A DNA stretch of 64,000 nt from positions 124,001-188,000 of the IMG/VR virus record IMGVR_UViG_3300030085_002431, one strand, 5' to 3'. The notes beneath the pieces were generated by a model that saw nothing but the letters and a program-made list of their open reading frames with translations, made no database searches and was not told where the DNA came from. This document shows positions 5,717 through 45,085 of this stretch, piece after piece. A program made the translations under genes and the position numbers. Each line of letters begins with the position of its first letter. Position 1 is the first letter of the stretch.

Positions 5717-5751
5717 TTTGCCTAAGGAGAGTTCGATCCTCTCATCGAGCA
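5679..5751 (+). tRNA. tRNA-CAT (elongator Met or Ile2)
   Basis: GCTCGAT/ATCGAGC acceptor, GCAAA-CTCATAA-TTTGC, GAGAG-TTCGATC-CTCTC; lacks initiator GGG/CCC stem. Confidence 0.92.
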
Positions 5752-5955
5752 TAGTCTTGGGATGACTTAAAAAGCACCCTGGTCGGGATGGGTTCTTACG
5801 ACCCCTCGGGTTTCTTGCTTTTCCATAAGAGCAAGTGGTGGAGCTAAGTGCTATCGAATATACCCCGCAGGATAAGGGTTAAGCCTGCTGGTGCGGACAT
5901 CTGCAAAGGTTTCTTGTTTTTCCTTACGTCTAAAAAAACAAGTGGCGAGCCTGCA
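5752..5955 (+). ncRNA. Structured cyanophage RNA, manA-like (manA/wcaG group)
   Basis: ~200 nt right after a tRNA and before a sugar epimerase; two GGTTTCTTG...CAAGTGGYG hairpin units, CTGGTCGGG/CTGGTGCGG motifs. Confidence 0.7.
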
Positions 5956-5963
5956 TACTAACG

Positions 5964-34158: not shown

Positions 34159-34200
34159 AATCAACGACGAAGAAGTTTACATTTCTTAATCCGTTGGACC

Positions 34201-34290
34201 ACACCCCTTAAACCGAGACCTCTAGGGTGTCAAAATTACGTCTCTCATACCAACCCTGGAGGGTAGGGTTGGAATATTATATTCAGTGTT
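34201..34290 (+). ncRNA. PhotoRC-II-like psbA leader RNA
   Basis: GAGAC/GTCTC stem, CCCT/AGGG pseudoknot potential, CCAACCCT/AGGGTTGG hairpin, upstream of psbA. Confidence 0.75.
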
Positions 34291-41638: not shown

Positions 41639-41857
41639 ATGTTAGCAGCAGAACTCATTATTTTTTCAATGGTTTCAATTCTGTTCTTGTTTGTAGGAGG
41701 AATCGTTGGATGGTTAGCAAAAGACTACGTTTATCAGACTCAACCAGTATATACACACCCCGAAATGTTTGATGCAAACGGAAACATTTTACCAGATGAA
41801 ATTTTAGCAGTACGATTTGAAAATGGCTATGACGACGACGAAGAAGACGACGAGTGA
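41639..41857 (+). CDS. Small membrane protein
   Basis: TM, HPEMFDANG. Confidence 0.7.
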   Translation: MLAAELIIFSMVSILFLFVGGIVGWLAKDYVYQTQPVYTHPEMFDANGNILPDEILAVRFENGYDDDEEDDE

Positions 41858-42413
41858 AGCAAAACCAAAAGTGAGCAGACGCAAGTCTGCTCCGAAAGCA
41901 ATCGAACAACTTCCTCCCAATCCCTTCACTTTTGAAGTTTTGAATCTTGCTGCAAAGCAGAGAAGCAAAGCAAAGAAGATTGAAGTATTGCAGAAGTACG
42001 AGCACGATTCAATCAAAGCAATTCTAATTTGGAATTTTGATGAAACCGTGATTTCCGTACTTCCCCCAGGAGAGGTCCCGTACTATGATGATGAGGAAAG
42101 GTCCTTGTCTGAACGCATTGCAGAGGCAGTAGAGGCACTGAATGGTGGTAAGTCCGTAGGTGCATTAGACACCAAGTTCACCGCACTCAGAACCGAATAT
42201 ACCAAACTCTACAATTTCATTAAAGGTGGAAACGATAGATTGAATAGTCTCCGTAGAGAGAATATTTTTATTGACCTTCTCAAAGGTCTTCATCCCCTTG
42301 AAGCAGAAATTATTTGTCTCTGTAAAGACAAGTTACTGACTAATAGATACAACCTGACAAAGGAGTTAGTATCTGAAGCATATCCTGATATTACCTGGGG
42401 AGGTAGAAGTTGA
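41823..42413 (+). CDS. Conserved T4-like hypothetical protein
   Basis: LIWNFD...LPPGEVPY...RRENIF..LLKGLHPLEA. Confidence 0.75.
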   Translation: MAMTTTKKTTSEAKPKVSRRKSAPKAIEQLPPNPFTFEVLNLAAKQRSKAKKIEVLQKYEHDSIKAILIWNFDETVISVLPPGEVPYYDDEERSLSERIAEAVEALNGGKSVGALDTKFTALRTEYTKLYNFIKGGNDRLNSLRRENIFIDLLKGLHPLEAEIICLCKDKLLTNRYNLTKELVSEAYPDITWGGRS

Positions 42414-42673
42414 AACAATTGAAGGTTATTCACAAAGAATGTGATCCCACCCTTGCACAAGACAGAACACTTCCATACACTGCCTACATTGTAGAGTATG
42501 TACAGGATGGAATTACCAAGTTCGATATTGTAACTGCTTCAAAACAAGTAGAAATATTCGATTACTACTGGGATAACTATCGGAGTGACTTCAAGAATAT
42601 GACACAAACAGAGGGGAGAGCTAACCCCAAACTTTGGGGAAACAAAGGACCCTCAGATAAAAAGAAAAAATGA
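42410..42673 (+). CDS. Hypothetical protein
   Basis: DRTLPYTAY...GRANPKLWG. Confidence 0.7.
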   Translation: MKQLKVIHKECDPTLAQDRTLPYTAYIVEYVQDGITKFDIVTASKQVEIFDYYWDNYRSDFKNMTQTEGRANPKLWGNKGPSDKKKK

Positions 42674-42834
42674 AAGAGAAATTTGAAGATGTCCTGAAGA
42701 GAGAACTCAAAGCAGAGTTTAAAAAACAGATGGATGTCGATGTCAATGAAGCAGAACTAGATAAGGTTCTGAAACAGTACACCAAAGTAAAAAAGTCCAA
42801 TCTTCATGAAATCAGGAGACTGGACAAGTCTTAA
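42670..42834 (+). CDS. Hypothetical protein (54 aa)
   Basis: ATGA overlap. Confidence 0.55.
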   Translation: MKEKFEDVLKRELKAEFKKQMDVDVNEAELDKVLKQYTKVKKSNLHEIRRLDKS

Positions 42835-42847
42835 GTTAGATTAAAAT

Positions 42848-42861
42848 GTATCACATGTTAC
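42848..42861. promoter_or_regulatory. NtcA-type binding site
   Basis: (T)GTA-TCACATGT-TAC(A) = GTA-N8-TAC. Confidence 0.7.
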
Positions 42862-42869
42862 ACATGTGG

Positions 42870-42898
42870 TTGACTATATAAAAGACAGGGACTATAAT
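42870..42898 (+). promoter_or_regulatory. sigma70 promoter
   Basis: TTGACT-17-TATAAT. Confidence 0.85.
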
Positions 42899-42907
42899 GT
42901 CCTCATA

Positions 42908-43141
42908 CGTTCATCCTAATGCTCAGTCTAATACTGGCATTGACCTTAGCCCATCATGATGATGCTAATCCATATGGTTGGCATATGAGTTGTGAAAGGT
43001 TTTTAGAGAAACGAGTTGAAATCCTTATGGACGACAACTTGGACCGACGTGCAAAGTATAACCTTATAGGTTATTTTAAATCGAAGGTTCCAGGTGAATG
43101 CAATAGTATACTGACTTAGGACGCAAGTAAGTCGCGGAACG
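42908..43141 (+). ncRNA. Glutamine-riboswitch-like unit 1, ORF in P2 loop
   Basis: P1 CGTTC/GAACG; P2 TCCTAA/TTAGGA; CGCAAGTA junction. Confidence 0.7.
42919..43119 (+). CDS. 66-aa protein nested in riboswitch unit 1
   Basis: Hydrophobic N-terminus, Cys25/Cys61. Confidence 0.7.
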   Translation: MLSLILALTLAHHDDANPYGWHMSCERFLEKRVEILMDDNLDRRAKYNLIGYFKSKVPGECNSILT

Positions 43142-43144
43142 GAG

Positions 43145-43323
43145 CGTTCATCCCATGTTAGAATTACTACTCTACAGTAATATTCACTGCATTGATGCTG
43201 TTGAAATGATTCAACGCATTGAAGCAAATAAAAATGTGGATAAAGTTATTCGCACTGAGGTGATTGAGACCTTAAAGGAAGCAACACCTGAGTGTAATTG
43301 GGACGCAAACGACTGAAGGAACG
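43145..43323 (+). ncRNA. Glutamine-riboswitch-like unit 2, ORF in P2 loop
   Basis: P1 CGTTC/GAACG; P2 TCCCA/TGGGA; CGCAAA-CGACT-GAAG. Confidence 0.7.
43155..43316 (+). CDS. 53-aa protein nested in riboswitch unit 2
   Basis: MLELLLYSNIHC...TPECNWDAND; GGAG SD at 43141-43144. Confidence 0.7.
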   Translation: MLELLLYSNIHCIDAVEMIQRIEANKNVDKVIRTEVIETLKEATPECNWDAND

Positions 43324-43356
43324 GGGCTACAATCCCATTCTTTTAGGAGACCTACA

Positions 43357-43524
43357 ATGAACACCCTCAATCTCATTCGCAAGCAAATCGAAAAGCAGGC
43401 AGCACTGCATGACGCACAAATCTCTCATACCGCATATCGTGGTGTTGAGTATGACCAACGTTGTGTAGAGTCCAAAGAGACTCATGGAACTTTCTGCTAT
43501 CGTGGCAAAACTTACACCAAGTAA
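43357..43524 (+). CDS. DUF4278-like YRG peptide (55 aa)
   Basis: AGGAGA SD; AYRGVEY and CYRGKTY. Confidence 0.85.
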   Translation: MNTLNLIRKQIEKQAALHDAQISHTAYRGVEYDQRCVESKETHGTFCYRGKTYTK

Positions 43525-43528
43525 ACCC

Positions 43529-43624
43529 ATGCAACAATTAACAGTCGTTGGATTAATTTCCTTAGGTTGTATTGCATTTATCGGAATGATGTATGGTGAG
43601 ATTCTCCTCCTGAATAGGAGGTAG
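43529..43624 (+). CDS. 31-aa membrane peptide
   Basis: MQQLTVVGLISLGCIAFIGMMYGEILLLNRR. Confidence 0.55.
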   Translation: MQQLTVVGLISLGCIAFIGMMYGEILLLNRR

Positions 43625-43801
43625 ATGGAACACTACACTTATCATCATGATGATAAGGACAAAGATAGTAGACCACCAGCATGTTATCAACTCACATATA
43701 GAGGTGTTAACTACTGGTCCTGTTATCAAATCCACTTGGATGAATGGTTTGAAAAATTATATACAACTTCAGCATTTTCTGAAGATTTAAAGGGGAGGTA
43801 A
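43625..43801 (+). CDS. Second YRG-motif peptide (58 aa)
   Basis: AGGAGG SD; LTYRGVNY. Confidence 0.7.
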   Translation: MEHYTYHHDDKDKDSRPPACYQLTYRGVNYWSCYQIHLDEWFEKLYTTSAFSEDLKGR

Positions 43802-43819
43802 AGTTACCTCTCTTTTTTT
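43791..43819 (+). terminator. Intrinsic terminator
   Basis: AGGGGAGGTAA...TTACCTCTCT followed by T run. Confidence 0.75.
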
Positions 43820-43877
43820 ATGCAATCGTGTTTAGTTAATTGAAGATTCATTTCCTCTATGTAAAAAAGCAATAAAT

Positions 43878-43891
43878 GTATATTAAGATAC
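43878..43891. promoter_or_regulatory. Second NtcA-type site
   Basis: GTA-TATTAAGA-TAC, TAGAAT 20 nt downstream. Confidence 0.55.
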
Positions 43892-44003
43892 CAAAACTTG
43901 TCTAGATAGTATAGAATTTATGAGGTGAGCCATGCACTTAAACTTCTGGGGTTAGTGATCCCGAACTTTATATTATCTCTCTCCCGTTGAAATTTTGGAG
44001 GTT

Positions 44004-44177
44004 ATGATGCACAACATCATTGCTAGAGAACAACTAACTGAATGGAGGCACTTTGAAGATACTATCGATGACCTAGAGTCTGAACTTCAAATCATTAACG
44101 ACTACTACGAATGCCTAATCGAGTGCGATGAAGACCAAGCAACATGTAAGAGAATATGTAGGAGACTCTTATCATGA
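44004..44177 (+). CDS. Small Cys-rich protein
   Basis: GGAGG SD; YYECLIECDEDQATCKRIC. Confidence 0.75.
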   Translation: MMHNIIAREQLTEWRHFEDTIDDLESELQIINDYYECLIECDEDQATCKRICRRLLS

Positions 44178-44199
44178 ATGATTGCTAATATAGATTGCA

Positions 44200-44237
44200 A
44201 AGGAGACCTTGACGGGTCTCCTTTTTTTATGTAGAAT
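44200..44237 (+). terminator. Terminator with embedded promoter (TTGACG-17-TAGAAT)
   Basis: AAGGAGACC-TTGACG-GGTCTCCTT followed by T run. Confidence 0.75.
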
Positions 44238-44262
44238 CGAGGTTGATCCCTCACATGGTTTT

Positions 44263-44439
44263 ATGGACAAGGAACGATTAAAACTAATTGTTAGAAATCT
44301 AGAATTGCTTGTCGATGGTCTGAAGTCGGAAGTCTATTCTGATGTTGACGCCTACAAGGCAGAGAACTATGATGACCCTCCTGAGTACTACCATGATTAT
44401 GATGAGGTCTTCTCCGACGATGATGGATACCCCGACTGA
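44263..44439 (+). CDS. Acidic hypothetical protein
   Basis: MDKERLKLIVRNLELLV. Confidence 0.7.
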   Translation: MDKERLKLIVRNLELLVDGLKSEVYSDVDAYKAENYDDPPEYYHDYDEVFSDDDGYPD

Positions 44440-44443
44440 ACGA

Positions 44444-45085
44444 ATGACCCAAACTGTAACTCTAGTCTCTGTTACTCCTGATGCAGAGAAGCACATGGCA
44501 TATTGTGCCCGTGTAAGCAATCCTAATAATCAGGAAAATGAGAAGTTCTCTGGACTCCTCAAGTATTGTGTGAAGCACCAGCATTGGAGCATCTTTGAGC
44601 AAGCATTCATGACTCTGGAAATCAACACTACCAGGGGTCTGGCAGCTCAAATACTGCGCCATCGCTCATTTACATATCAAGAATTTTCACAACGGTATGC
44701 TGATTCTTCCCTACTCTCGGAGACGATCCCTCTACCTGAACTACGCAGACAAGACACCAAGAATCGTCAGAATTCTATTGATGATGTTGACCCGTTTACG
44801 GTGCAGAAGTTTGAAATGCTGATGCAACAGCACTTTCAGGCAGGTATGGACCTCTATCAGAAGATGCTCAATGAGGGGATCGCAAAGGAGTGTGCCCGCT
44901 TTGTGCTTCCTTTAGCATGTCCCACAAGACTTTACATGACGGGATCTGTGCGCTCATGGATCCATTATATCGATTTGCGTTCTGCTAATGGAACACAGAA
45001 AGAACATATGGACATTGCCAATATGGCAAAGGGAATCTTTATTGAACAATTCCCTGCTGTTGCTGAGGCAATGGAGTGGGTCTAA
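44444..45085 (+). CDS. thyX: FAD-dependent thymidylate synthase
   Basis: RHRSFTYQEFSQRY, ECARFVLP. Confidence 0.96.
   Translation: MTQTVTLVSVTPDAEKHMAYCARVSNPNNQENEKFSGLLKYCVKHQHWSIFEQAFMTLEINTTRGLAAQILRHRSFTYQEFSQRYADSSLLSETIPLPELRRQDTKNRQNSIDDVDPFTVQKFEMLMQQHFQAGMDLYQKMLNEGIAKECARFVLPLACPTRLYMTGSVRSWIHYIDLRSANGTQKEHMDIANMAKGIFIEQFPAVAEAMEWV

Follow-up and report, generated by a model that had tools for sequence, protein, structure and literature searches.

Results

We examined a 64,000-nucleotide stretch of DNA (positions 124,001 to 188,000 of IMG/VR record IMGVR_UViG_3300030085_002431; here called the window) that derives from a T4-like cyanomyovirus. Positions 42847 to 43820 form one small operon comprising an NtcA-type box, a near-consensus sigma-70 promoter, five short conserved open reading frames (ORFs), and a terminator. 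All of these features other than the palindromic box were assigned to the plus strand. The operon recurs in hundreds of cyanophage records, including isolates and metagenomic contigs. A preliminary description of this region, made from sequence alone, had listed the box, the promoter, glutamine-sensing RNAs, YRG-containing peptides, a transmembrane peptide, and a terminator. Each of these sequence features was found where it had been placed, and the observation is therefore confirmed, although the glutamine-sensing elements are organized differently from how they had been described.

The NtcA-type palindrome TGTATCACATGTTACA (TGTA-N8-TACA) lies at 42847 to 42862, with its GTA-N8-TAC core at 42848 to 42861. 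Seven nucleotides separate TACA from the -35 box, or 8 nt when counted from TAC. The promoter consists of TTGACT (42870 to 42875), a 17-nt spacer, and TATAAT (42893 to 42898). It is the best promoter match in the region from 42000 to 44800, agreeing at 11 of 12 positions, and its predicted start is at approximately 42904 to 42907. A single GTA-N8-TAC is not remarkable in the window (20 found versus 10.9 expected). However, among 119 distinct homologous upstream regions, 101 carry the box, about 92 of them centered 43 to 54 nt upstream of the CGUUCA that begins the aptamer. About 77% of the 119 promoters carry the box within a 12-nt position window upstream of the -35 box, against an expectation of 0.7%. 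The flanking T and A are usually kept, while the 8-nt spacer varies freely. About 15% of relatives lack the box, and about 11% use a T4-late-type TATAAATA promoter instead; in these late-promoter relatives a GTARC-N4-GYTAC palindrome lies downstream of TATAAATA, where it could equally be an RNA hairpin. NtcA-dependent promoters have GTA-N8-TAC centered near -41.5, about 22 nt before TAN3T, and usually lack a -35 box. In the window, the gap from the box to the -10 box is 31 nt (26 nt in a second spacing class of relatives), and a consensus -35 box is present. The same -35/-10 layout ends 8 to 9 nt before CGUUCA in most relatives.

To determine whether the operon is expressed, we compared it with marine metatranscriptomes. 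The operon is transcribed in the ocean, at about 4 to 10 times the level of its upstream neighbors for exact-match contigs, and across four metatranscriptomes it stands far above its neighbors. Depth is about 0 upstream of 42846 in three of four runs and about 0 beyond 43786. Because these data are assembled contigs, they do not resolve a transcription start; one exact-match contig starts at 42885, upstream of the predicted start, and an exact-match RNA contig ends at 43798. An intrinsic-terminator-like hairpin of 12 bp followed by a U-run lies at 43789 to 43819 (-14.3 kcal/mol, z = -2.8). A terminator scan did not list this hairpin, but direct folding supports it. The ORF5 stop codon (43799 to 43801) spans the end of its 5' stem strand and the first loop base.

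ORF1 (42919 to 43119; 66 amino acids [aa]) belongs to the Syn9 gp196 family (phrog_6471). Its length is 198 nt in 77 of 79 sequences, with a dN/dS of about 0.13. It is present or absent among close relatives. ORF2 (43155 to 43316; 53 aa) belongs to the Syn9 gp197 family (phrog_504); its length variants differ by multiples of 3, its dN/dS is about 0.28, and its last codons are the aptamer's GGGACGCAAACGACUGA. An unrelated 57-aa ORF occupies this slot in one relative (locus L111). Both ORF1 and ORF2 are thus coding and under purifying selection. ORF3 (43357 to 43524; 55 aa, two YRG motifs) belongs to the Syn9 gp198 family (phrog_545). ORF4 (43529 to 43624) is a 31-aa single-helix hydrophobic peptide with a conserved YGE motif; it is conserved 3 to 11 nt after ORF3 in 85 loci at 42 to 100% identity and is unannotated in the Sf-CH1b record. 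ORF5 (43625 to 43801; 58 aa) carries one YRG motif within YRGVxYWSCY and is conserved in 35 loci. ORF4 and ORF5 are missing from the PHROGs families.

Searches for homologs of ORF1 and ORF3, including PHROGs and the protein atlas, returned only unnamed phage or metagenome proteins. ORF3 scores 22.4 bits against the Pfam DUF4278 model (PF14105, which includes IF17/GifB), below the gathering score of 25.3 bits, and ORF5 scores 15.7 bits. All 20 members of the ORF3 family match this model, but below threshold. The ORF3 family profile nevertheless reaches a true DUF4278 protein (P0338) at E = 7e-4, indicating that ORF3 is a remote relative rather than a filed member. A profile comparison of ORF3 with ORF5 aligned only a 9-residue motif, at 28% probability, and a profile search of the PDB with the ORF3 family found no relative of solved structure. 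ORF3 has no counterpart of the IF17 C-terminal region, which is required for binding glutamine synthetase; the same caveat has been raised for marine (Prochlorococcus) IF17-like proteins (PMC6212724).

To identify the glutamine-sensing RNA, we searched the window with Rfam. No glutamine riboswitch model matched at the gathering threshold, nor at E ≤ 10 on 1.7-kb and 271-nt slices; the window therefore does not reach the 35-bit gathering score of Glutamine-I (RF01739). This failure is explained by insertions of 200 nt and roughly 180 nt: the aptamer parts are real but are split by ORFs, such that the 5' strand (CGUUCA, 42908) and the closing 3' strand (GAAGGAACG, 43315 to 43323) lie about 410 nt apart. 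In contrast, a natural, fully compact relative (locus L175) scores 46.4 bits against Glutamine-I, aligned with the same topology as the outer aptamer with a 41-nt insertion in P3. Single canonical aptamers (42 to 44.4 bits) precede distant phage homologs of ORF3, and 19 of 19 compact first halves gave position-matched subthreshold hits. The Glutamine-II model (Downstream-peptide motif, RF01704; threshold 33 bits), whose P2 hairpin loop holds GGAACGG as a pseudoknot strand, was not matched: the best scores were 29.8 bits and, for the second half of L175, 28.1 bits, with noncanonical pairs in the supposed P2.

Comparative analysis indicated that the leader is a nested pair of aptamer cores. The outer P1 5' strand CGUUC and the junction A (42908 to 42913) begin 9 nt after the -10 box, and CGUUC (42908 to 42912) pairs with GAACG at 43319 to 43323, closing a three-way junction. 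Compensatory C-to-U/G-to-A changes in this helix occur in at least 11 viral contigs, and both the unconstrained minimum free energy (MFE) fold and the Rfam alignment of L175 give the same pairing. The outer P2 stem-loop (42914 to 43121) is closed by UCCUAA (42914 to 42919) with UUAGGA (43116 to 43121), and the whole of ORF1 lies in its loop, with the start codon in the P2 5' strand and the stop codon in the 3' strand. Across 80 distinct ORF1-bearing sequences, pairs 0 and 1 are 100% paired, whereas pair 2 is C-G in 40, U-A in 38, and unpaired in 2, with 14 to 16 changes on the ORF1 tree. The ORF1 start and stop codons are placed exactly in the two P2 strands in 65 to 70 of 79 sequences. In 42 distinct relatives a short hairpin occurs here instead, with C-G, U-A, A-U, and G-C at pairs 2 and 3. 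The outer J2/3 (CGCAAGUA, 43122 to 43129) and P3 5' strand (AGUC, 43130 to 43133) match the Glutamine-I consensus CGGAAGUA-P3 and are invariant in 152 of 166 copies. P3 (AGUC/GACU, 43130 to 43133 with 43311 to 43314) is itself invariant and so has no covariation support.

The outer P3 helix opens into a second, circularly permuted aptamer core. This inner core begins at 43134 to 43150 with GCG, a local P1 hairpin (GAACG-GAG-CGUUC), and the junction A. All 49 viral contigs with a G-to-C change in GAACG also carry C-to-G in CGUUC; the loop varies (GAG, GAA, GAU, GAGC, GAGU), and the hairpin appears in the MFE folds. The inner P2 stem-loop (43151 to 43303) is closed by UCCCA (43151 to 43155) with UGGGA (43299 to 43303), and most of ORF2 lies in its loop. 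The five closing pairs are 99 to 100% paired in 121 distinct sequences, with pair 0 being U-A in 115 and C-G in 6, and one locus (L138) has UCUUA/UAAGA. Compact versions with no ORF2 occur in loci L175 to L179 and in metatranscriptome contigs. The region from 43304 to 43324 comprises the inner J2/3 (CGCAAAC), the P3 3' strand (GACU), the outer J3/1 (GAAG), the outer P1 3' strand (GAACG), and the following G; the GAAGGAACG motif equals the Glutamine-I consensus. The MFE of positions 42906 to 43325 is the nested fold (z = -5.4), and the MFE of the 87-nt compact version agrees. All nucleotides that contact glutamine in the solved Glutamine-I/II structures (C1, G2, G18, C19, C39, G40, and G41; PMC6698751) are present in both cores. 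However, the inner core lacks a loop-E strand of its own and its linchpin G sits in a triloop, such that it is at most a putative glutamine-binding site.

A putative expression platform lies at 43313 to 43349. Here, helix X pairs CUGAAGGAA (43313 to 43321) with UUCUUUUAG (43338 to 43346) around a small hairpin (43324 to 43336) and overlaps the Shine-Dalgarno sequence AGGAG (43345 to 43349) of ORF3. Six core pairs are 97 to 100% paired in 99 distinct sequences; pair 2 is G-C in 52, A-U in 24, and G-U in 23. Helix X covaries with the outer P1 change in loci L229 to L231 and is mutually exclusive with outer P1. In the 6-bp versions, it leaves three of the five Shine-Dalgarno bases unpaired. ORF3 codon 2 is AAC in 98 of 103 sequences, against 34% AAC genome-wide.

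Two other readings of the RNA were considered and rejected. Each intergenic gap (a 3' half plus the next 5' half) was at first read as a circularly permuted local aptamer using the flanking P2 strands, but the upstream P2 3' strand covaries with the far 5' strand and not with the adjacent UCCC. Splicing or processing of the ORF2 insert was considered because metatranscriptome contigs skip 43154 to 43300. However, the skipping contigs carry their own UUCG or GUCUUCGGAC loops and are genomic variants, and L175 to L179 show that such variants exist.

Discussion

Taken together, these results suggest that this conserved cyanomyovirus operon has a messenger that starts with an RNA of the Glutamine-I (glnA RNA) riboswitch class, built in an unusual nested form. 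We favor this explanation with moderate confidence. The nested architecture is shown by sequence comparison, whereas glutamine binding, the switching mechanism, the input from NtcA, and any effect of the peptides on glutamine synthetase are inferred from sequence and from precedent. In the proposed mechanism, the outer 3' strand pairs in the absence of glutamine with the sequence just before and into the Shine-Dalgarno site of ORF3 (helix X), and in that state the 5' strand GUUCAU can pair with the ORF3 start, AUGAAC. Glutamine would stabilize outer P1, free the ribosome-binding site, and switch on translation of ORF3, probably together with the closely following ORF4 and ORF5. Published Glutamine-I and -II riboswitches are likewise ON switches acting on translation (PMC6212724, PMC6698751). 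Because the ORF1 and ORF2 start codons lie in the P2 helices, their translation and aptamer folding should oppose each other; ribosomes translating either ORF would unfold P2 and P3, which weighs against ready folding of an aptamer spanning 410 nt on a translated messenger. Transcription is inferred to come from a host-type promoter with an NtcA-type box just upstream, so 2-oxoglutarate status probably also feeds in, although the strong -35 box suggests that an activator may not be needed. A role in modulating glutamine synthetase rests only on the weak resemblance of ORF3 to the DUF4278 family, which includes the glutamine synthetase inactivating factor IF17.

The interpretation in the preliminary description is therefore partly supported. 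It proposed that the phage reads both 2-oxoglutarate (via NtcA) and glutamine and may tune host glutamine synthetase or nitrogen flux, citing gifB and Downstream-peptide RNAs as precedents. The region is indeed one conserved operon that combines an NtcA-type box, a host-type promoter, glutamine-riboswitch sequence, and DUF4278-like peptides. However, the sensors are not two simple aptamers that precede genes but one nested double aptamer with ORF1 and ORF2 inside its stem-loops, and the aptamer type is Glutamine-I, not Downstream-peptide/Glutamine-II. The box lies about 9 nt further from the -10 box than in canonical activated promoters, and in host gifB-like genes the NtcA site is a repressor site (PMC6212724); the logic is therefore not a copy of gifB. 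In addition, ORF3 falls below the DUF4278 threshold, and ORF5 shares only a YRGVxY motif.

We weighed these conclusions against alternatives. Tandem glutamine riboswitches are common, with 157 doublets reported (PMC9481103), and two side-by-side aptamers (42908 to 42912 with 43137 to 43141, and 43145 to 43149 with 43319 to 43323), each with its own expression platform, could account for the subthreshold Glutamine-I/II hits of 21 to 34 bits in compact first halves and for the Glutamine-II hit in the second half of L175. When the downstream strand is left out, the MFE does pair 42908 to 42912 with 43137 to 43141. Nevertheless, the natural variants (C,G|G,C), (U,A|G,C), and (U,A|C,G) break one or both P1 helices of the tandem fold yet are perfectly paired in the nested fold. 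Each half-aptamer lacks P3 and has only one strand of the loop-E module, whereas the two halves together reconstitute the consensus, and Rfam's own best alignment is the nested one. We therefore consider the tandem arrangement unlikely, although a transient exchange between the two folds is not excluded. It is also unlikely that the riboswitch in ORF-bearing phages is a disabled relic whose half-sites persist only as recombination anchors or translation signals in a constitutive operon. T4-type phages shuffle small gene cassettes at repeated regulatory elements, ORF1 and ORF2 are independently present or absent among close relatives, the second slot can hold an unrelated ORF, and a truncated remnant lacking the 5' half exists (L232 type). 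However, the 5' strand, both junctions, and P3 stay invariant in ORF-bearing phages, the helix closing the 200-nt ORF1 insertion keeps compensatory pairing, the ORF1 start and stop codons are precisely placed in the P2 strands, and the anti-Shine-Dalgarno helix still tracks outer P1 changes in L229 to L231, where ORF2 is in place.

With respect to the promoter, the palindrome could instead be bound by another CRP-family or phage regulator, or could simply be an upstream promoter element, in which case nitrogen status would enter only through the riboswitch. The noncanonical spacing, the full -35 and -10 boxes, and the displaced palindrome of late-promoter relatives are consistent with this possibility, which we regard as doubtful but the strongest of these alternatives. 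Against it, GTA-N8-TAC is the defining NtcA core (PMC3898017). NtcA is the only known cyanobacterial factor with this motif. A more speculative extension, which we consider unlikely but cannot exclude, is that the leader is a translation-coupled two-way switch. In this view, low glutamine would open the P2 helices so that ORF1 and ORF2 are translated while ORF3 to ORF5 are masked, whereas high glutamine would lock the nested double aptamer cooperatively through two sites that share P3, burying the ORF1 and ORF2 start codons and exposing ORF3 to ORF5. One abundant phage messenger would then yield two alternative peptide sets according to host nitrogen status, with NtcA setting the amount of messenger, and this would be the first riboswitch whose aptamer contains translated genes.

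Cyanomyoviruses are among the most abundant viruses in the sea, and nitrogen limits their hosts. The element shows a metabolite aptamer, assigned by sequence and structure, that tolerates or exploits whole genes in its stem-loops, and two aptamer cores fused through a shared helix, one of them circularly permuted. Standard covariance-model scans miss such interrupted forms, so riboswitch censuses in phages may undercount them. Five conserved microproteins are also tied to a predicted direct readout of glutamine, and probably of 2-oxoglutarate, providing a handle on how phages sense and perhaps reset host nitrogen assimilation.

Among known systems, the closest is the Glutamine-I riboswitch, including the gifB leader of Synechocystis. 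The phage element shares its consensus (CGUUCA-P2-CGNAAGUA-P3-GAAGGAACG), its three-way junction, its link to a DUF4278-type downstream gene, and an expected ON switch at the ribosome-binding site, and glnA RNAs have already been reported in T4-like cyanophages (PMC9964418, PMC6212724). It differs in that P2 holds a complete coding gene, the P3 loop holds a second, circularly permuted core whose own P2 holds another gene, the aptamer spans about 415 nt instead of about 60, and the standard model cannot detect it in this window. The Glutamine-II riboswitch of marine picocyanobacteria has the same ligand-contacting nucleotides, occurs in the same host group, sits upstream of short DUF4278-like peptides, and has an NtcA site nearby in Prochlorococcus MED4 (PMC6212724, PMC6698751). 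However, the phage element has no P2-enclosed pseudoknot, scores below that threshold (21 to 30 bits against 33), and has the loop-E/P3 module of class I. As in tandem (pseudo-cooperative) riboswitches (PMC9481103), two predicted ligand-binding cores lie in one leader, but here they are not consecutive units; they share P3, one is nested inside the other, and the P1 partners are therefore crossed relative to a tandem. Like NtcA-activated class II promoters and the NtcA sites predicted in cyanomyoviruses (PMC3037559, PMC3898017), the operon has a GTA-N8-TAC palindrome immediately upstream of the core promoter, but the box center is at about -45 or -50 rather than -41.5 and a consensus -35 box is retained, whereas host gifB-type genes carry repressor-position sites. 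Finally, group I and group II introns with ORFs in peripheral loops, such as the T4 td intron with I-TevI, also place a protein gene in a loop of a structured RNA whose long-range helices must still close, so that RNA folding and ORF translation compete. In the phage leader, by contrast, the structured RNA is a predicted metabolite sensor rather than a ribozyme, the ORFs are not homing endonucleases, and no splicing occurs.

Genomic context and conservation of the operon

The window is a T4-like cyanomyovirus that carries RNA elements known from cyanophages, namely two adjacent wcaG RNAs (positions 5751-5849 and 5859-5956; 50.1 and 43.0 bits), a PhotoRC-II RNA (34189-34285; 77.1 bits), and one tRNA (1558-1628). 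To determine how broadly the operon is conserved, we compared the region 42600-44000 with other phage genomes, where it matched 420 Synechococcus or Prochlorococcus phage records at 65-75% identity. The conserved block corresponds to Syn9 gp196-gp198 and sits in different neighborhoods in different phages: after nrdB and before talC, or before thyX. In the window, the flanking genes are a 198-aa DUF6433 protein upstream (41817-42413) and a 247-aa ORF downstream (44342-45085), which aligns in relatives with annotated thymidylate synthase (ThyX). More than 587 IMG/VR contigs encode ORF3 relatives.

Every feature listed in a preliminary description of this locus was found in the sequence. TGTA-N8-TACA lies at 42847-62, TTGACT-17-TATAAT lies at 42870-98, CGUUCA starts at 42908, and these are followed by five ORFs of 66, 53, 55, 31, and 58 aa and by a 12-bp hairpin plus U-run at 43789-43819. 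However, no Rfam glutamine riboswitch model matched the window at any threshold tried.

Identification of an interrupted, predicted glutamine aptamer

The aptamer was recognized by comparison with S-RS29, which lacks ORF1. There, the same promoter is followed by a contiguous CGUUCAUCCCAC-UUCG-GUGGGACGCAAGUAAGUCGCGGAACG, which gives subthreshold Glutamine-I and Glutamine-II hits. The window has the same two halves, separated by ORF1, and a second pair of halves is separated by ORF2. Among the fetched loci (designated L followed by a number), 42 distinct sequences have a short first hairpin, whereas 80 have ORF1 there instead. ORF1 is 198 nt in 77 of 79 sequences, its ATG is at +10 from CGUUCA in 65 of 79, and its stop ends 2 nt before CGCAAG in 70 of 79 (dN/dS = 0.13). 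ORF2 lengths differ by multiples of three (dN/dS = 0.28). The helix that closes the ORF1 insertion is maintained: one pair is C-G in 40 sequences, U-A in 38, and unpaired in 2, and it changes 14-16 times on a tree built from the ORF1 interior. Compact versions of the second hairpin also exist, both in the related loci L175-L179 and in RNA contigs, and all four presence/absence combinations of ORF1 and ORF2 therefore occur. Locus L111 carries an unrelated ORF in the second slot. In a truncated variant (IMG/VR loci L232, L234, L239, L240, and L242), the outer 5′ strand, P2, and the first 3′ half are replaced by an unrelated gene, leaving CGUUG...AAACG, which cannot pair. This variant retains ORF2 and ORF3 and looks like a broken remnant of the riboswitch.

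Nested topology of the two predicted aptamer cores

To investigate how these halves pair, we examined distant phage homologues of ORF3, which are preceded by single canonical Glutamine-I aptamers scoring 42-44.4 bits against a threshold of 35. The P3 of these aptamers reads AGUC-loop-GACU. In the window, AGUC follows the first CGCAAGUA (43130-33) and GACU precedes the second GAAGGAACG (43311-14), and each half-aptamer therefore owns one strand of P3 and one strand of the loop-E module. This arrangement suggested a nested fold, in which the outer P1 pairs 42908-12 with 43319-23, P3 pairs 43130-33 with 43311-14, and the inner P1 is a local hairpin at 43137-49.

We weighed this fold against the alternative of two aptamers lying side by side in tandem, and four independent lines of evidence agreed on the nested form. 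The unconstrained minimum free energy (MFE) structure of 42906-43325 is exactly this fold (z = −5.4), and the MFE structure of the natural 87-nt compact version is the same. Rfam aligned the compact version as one Glutamine-I aptamer with a 41-nt P3 insertion, at 46.4 bits. Finally, natural variation fits only the nested fold. All 49 viral contigs with G→C in the first GAACG have C→G in the second CGUUC, and at least 11 contigs with G→A in the second GAACG have C→U in the first CGUUC; the combinations seen pair perfectly in the nested fold and mismatch in a side-by-side tandem. One relative (L096; positions 1000-1040 and its second 3′ half) has altered linkers in both halves (AAGUAAGCCGACUCGGAACG and CGCAAAAGCCGACUGAAGGAACG), which look like gene conversion between the two strands and which weaken the AGUC/GACU P3 pairing.

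Predicted expression platform

We next examined the sequence between the outer aptamer and ORF3. In 99 distinct sequences, CUGAAG(GAA), which is the outer J3/1 plus the start of the P1 3′ strand, pairs with CUUCAG/UUCUUUUAG. The last two bases of the latter strand are the first two bases of the ORF3 Shine-Dalgarno AGGAG. The six core pairs are 97-100% paired, and one of them switches among G-C (52 sequences), A-U (24), and G-U (23). In the related loci L229-L231, whose outer P1 carries the G→A change, the downstream strand changes from UUCUUUUAG to UUUCUUUAG, which keeps pairing. The same nucleotide thus covaries with both of its alternative partners, as expected for mutually exclusive helices. 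Folds that include the ORF3 start also pair GUUCAU of the 5′ strand with AUGAAC, and ORF3 codon 2 is AAC in 98 of 103 distinct sequences, although AAC represents only 34% of Asn codons in the window's long ORFs. Some relatives (L001:1934-2020, L006:1605-1690, L022, L051, L067, L098, L126, and L156) replace the small hairpin at window positions 43324-36, between the outer GGAACG and the ORF3 Shine-Dalgarno site, with a 25-30-nt module, GGGNAACGGAUCC-hairpin-GAGAAGGUUAAUCACCC. The hairpin of this module covaries (ACC/GGU, UCC/GGA, UGC/GCA, and AGC/GCU, mostly with GAAA loops), and its internal loop resembles a loop-E motif or a glnA-like 3′ half.

The sequence comparisons show the nested pairing and the covariation of the helix ahead of ORF3, whereas glutamine binding by either core and the regulatory logic are inferred. 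The inferred logic is glutamine-ON for ORF3, as shown experimentally for both glutamine riboswitch classes (PMC6212724, PMC6698751). By inference, ORF4 and ORF5, which follow within 4 and 0 nt, are probably expressed with ORF3. The start codons of ORF1 and ORF2 lie in the P2 closing helices, and their translation should therefore antagonize aptamer folding, which is likewise an inference.

Promoter architecture and transcription

Of 119 distinct upstream regions, 101 have GTA-N8-TAC within 90 nt, and about 92 of these are centered 43-54 nt upstream of CGUUCA, compared with a chance expectation of 0.7% for that position window. The 8-nt spacer varies freely while the half-sites are kept. Two spacing classes were observed, with the box either abutting the −35 box or 8 nt from it, as in the window. 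The gap to the −10 box is 26 or 31 nt, in contrast to the canonical 22 nt (PMC3898017), and a good −35 box is retained. Activation, repression, or the action of another factor all remain possible. About 13 relatives (including L004, L006, L019, L098, L116, L123, L125, L141, L146, and L163) instead drive the same leader from a T4-late-type TATAAATA promoter. In these, a covarying palindrome, GTARC-N4-GYTAC, lies between the promoter and the aptamer; it also fits GTA-N8-TAC and could be either an RNA hairpin or an operator. Within the window, the inverted repeat CACATGT-TAA-CATGTG (42852-42868) overlaps the right half of the NtcA-type box and was listed by a terminator scan as terminator-like on the minus strand, but it is not conserved in the close relatives L093-L095 and is probably incidental. 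A second GTA-N8-TAC (GTATATTAAGATAC; 43878-43902) lies just downstream of the terminator, 5 nt (43892-43896) before a TTGTCT −35-like hexamer and upstream of the next small genes (43925 and 43995 onward), and may be another NtcA-type promoter.

To examine transcription of the locus, we analyzed four marine metatranscriptomes as assembled contigs, which do not resolve the start site. Summed depth is about 0-6 upstream of 42846, rises to hundreds and then thousands across 43034-43409, falls to 17-46 over ORF4 and ORF5, and is about 0 after 43786. Part of the rise is inflated by relatives that share the conserved core. Exact-match contigs give depths of 50-79 over ORF2 and 22-24 over ORF4/5, against 5-6 for the upstream genes, and one exact-match contig ends at 43798, beside the terminator.

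Encoded proteins

ORF3 matches DUF4278 below threshold (22.4 against 25.3 bits), as do all 20 members of its family, and the family profile reaches a bona fide multirepeat DUF4278 protein. ORF5 shares only the YRGVxY motif with ORF3. ORF4 is a conserved single-helix peptide present in 85 loci; it is unannotated in Sf-CH1b and absent from PHROGs. ORF1 and ORF2 belong to phage-only families of unknown function. The preliminary description had proposed that the phage reads both 2-oxoglutarate, via NtcA, and glutamine and may tune host glutamine synthetase or nitrogen flux. On the present evidence this interpretation is partly supported, with the suggestion regarding glutamine synthetase remaining conjecture on which none of our analyses bears.

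Comparison with known glutamine riboswitches

In full-text literature searches, we found no description of genes embedded in the stem-loops of the aptamer, nor of a P3-fused nested pair with a circularly permuted inner core, although prior mention cannot be excluded. Other elements of the system are already in the literature: glnA RNAs in cyanophages, tandem glutamine riboswitches, NtcA boxes proposed in cyanomyoviruses, and the link between the riboswitch and DUF4278 (PMC9964418, PMC9481103, PMC3037559, PMC6212724). Both cores keep the nucleotides that contact glutamine in the crystal structures (PMC6698751), although for the inner core in particular ligand binding remains putative. Around its junction, the inner unit has the same cyclic order of helices and joining strands as Glutamine-I (P1, A, P2, CGCAA.., P3, G.G, P1) and is therefore a circular permutation that shares P3 with the outer aptamer.
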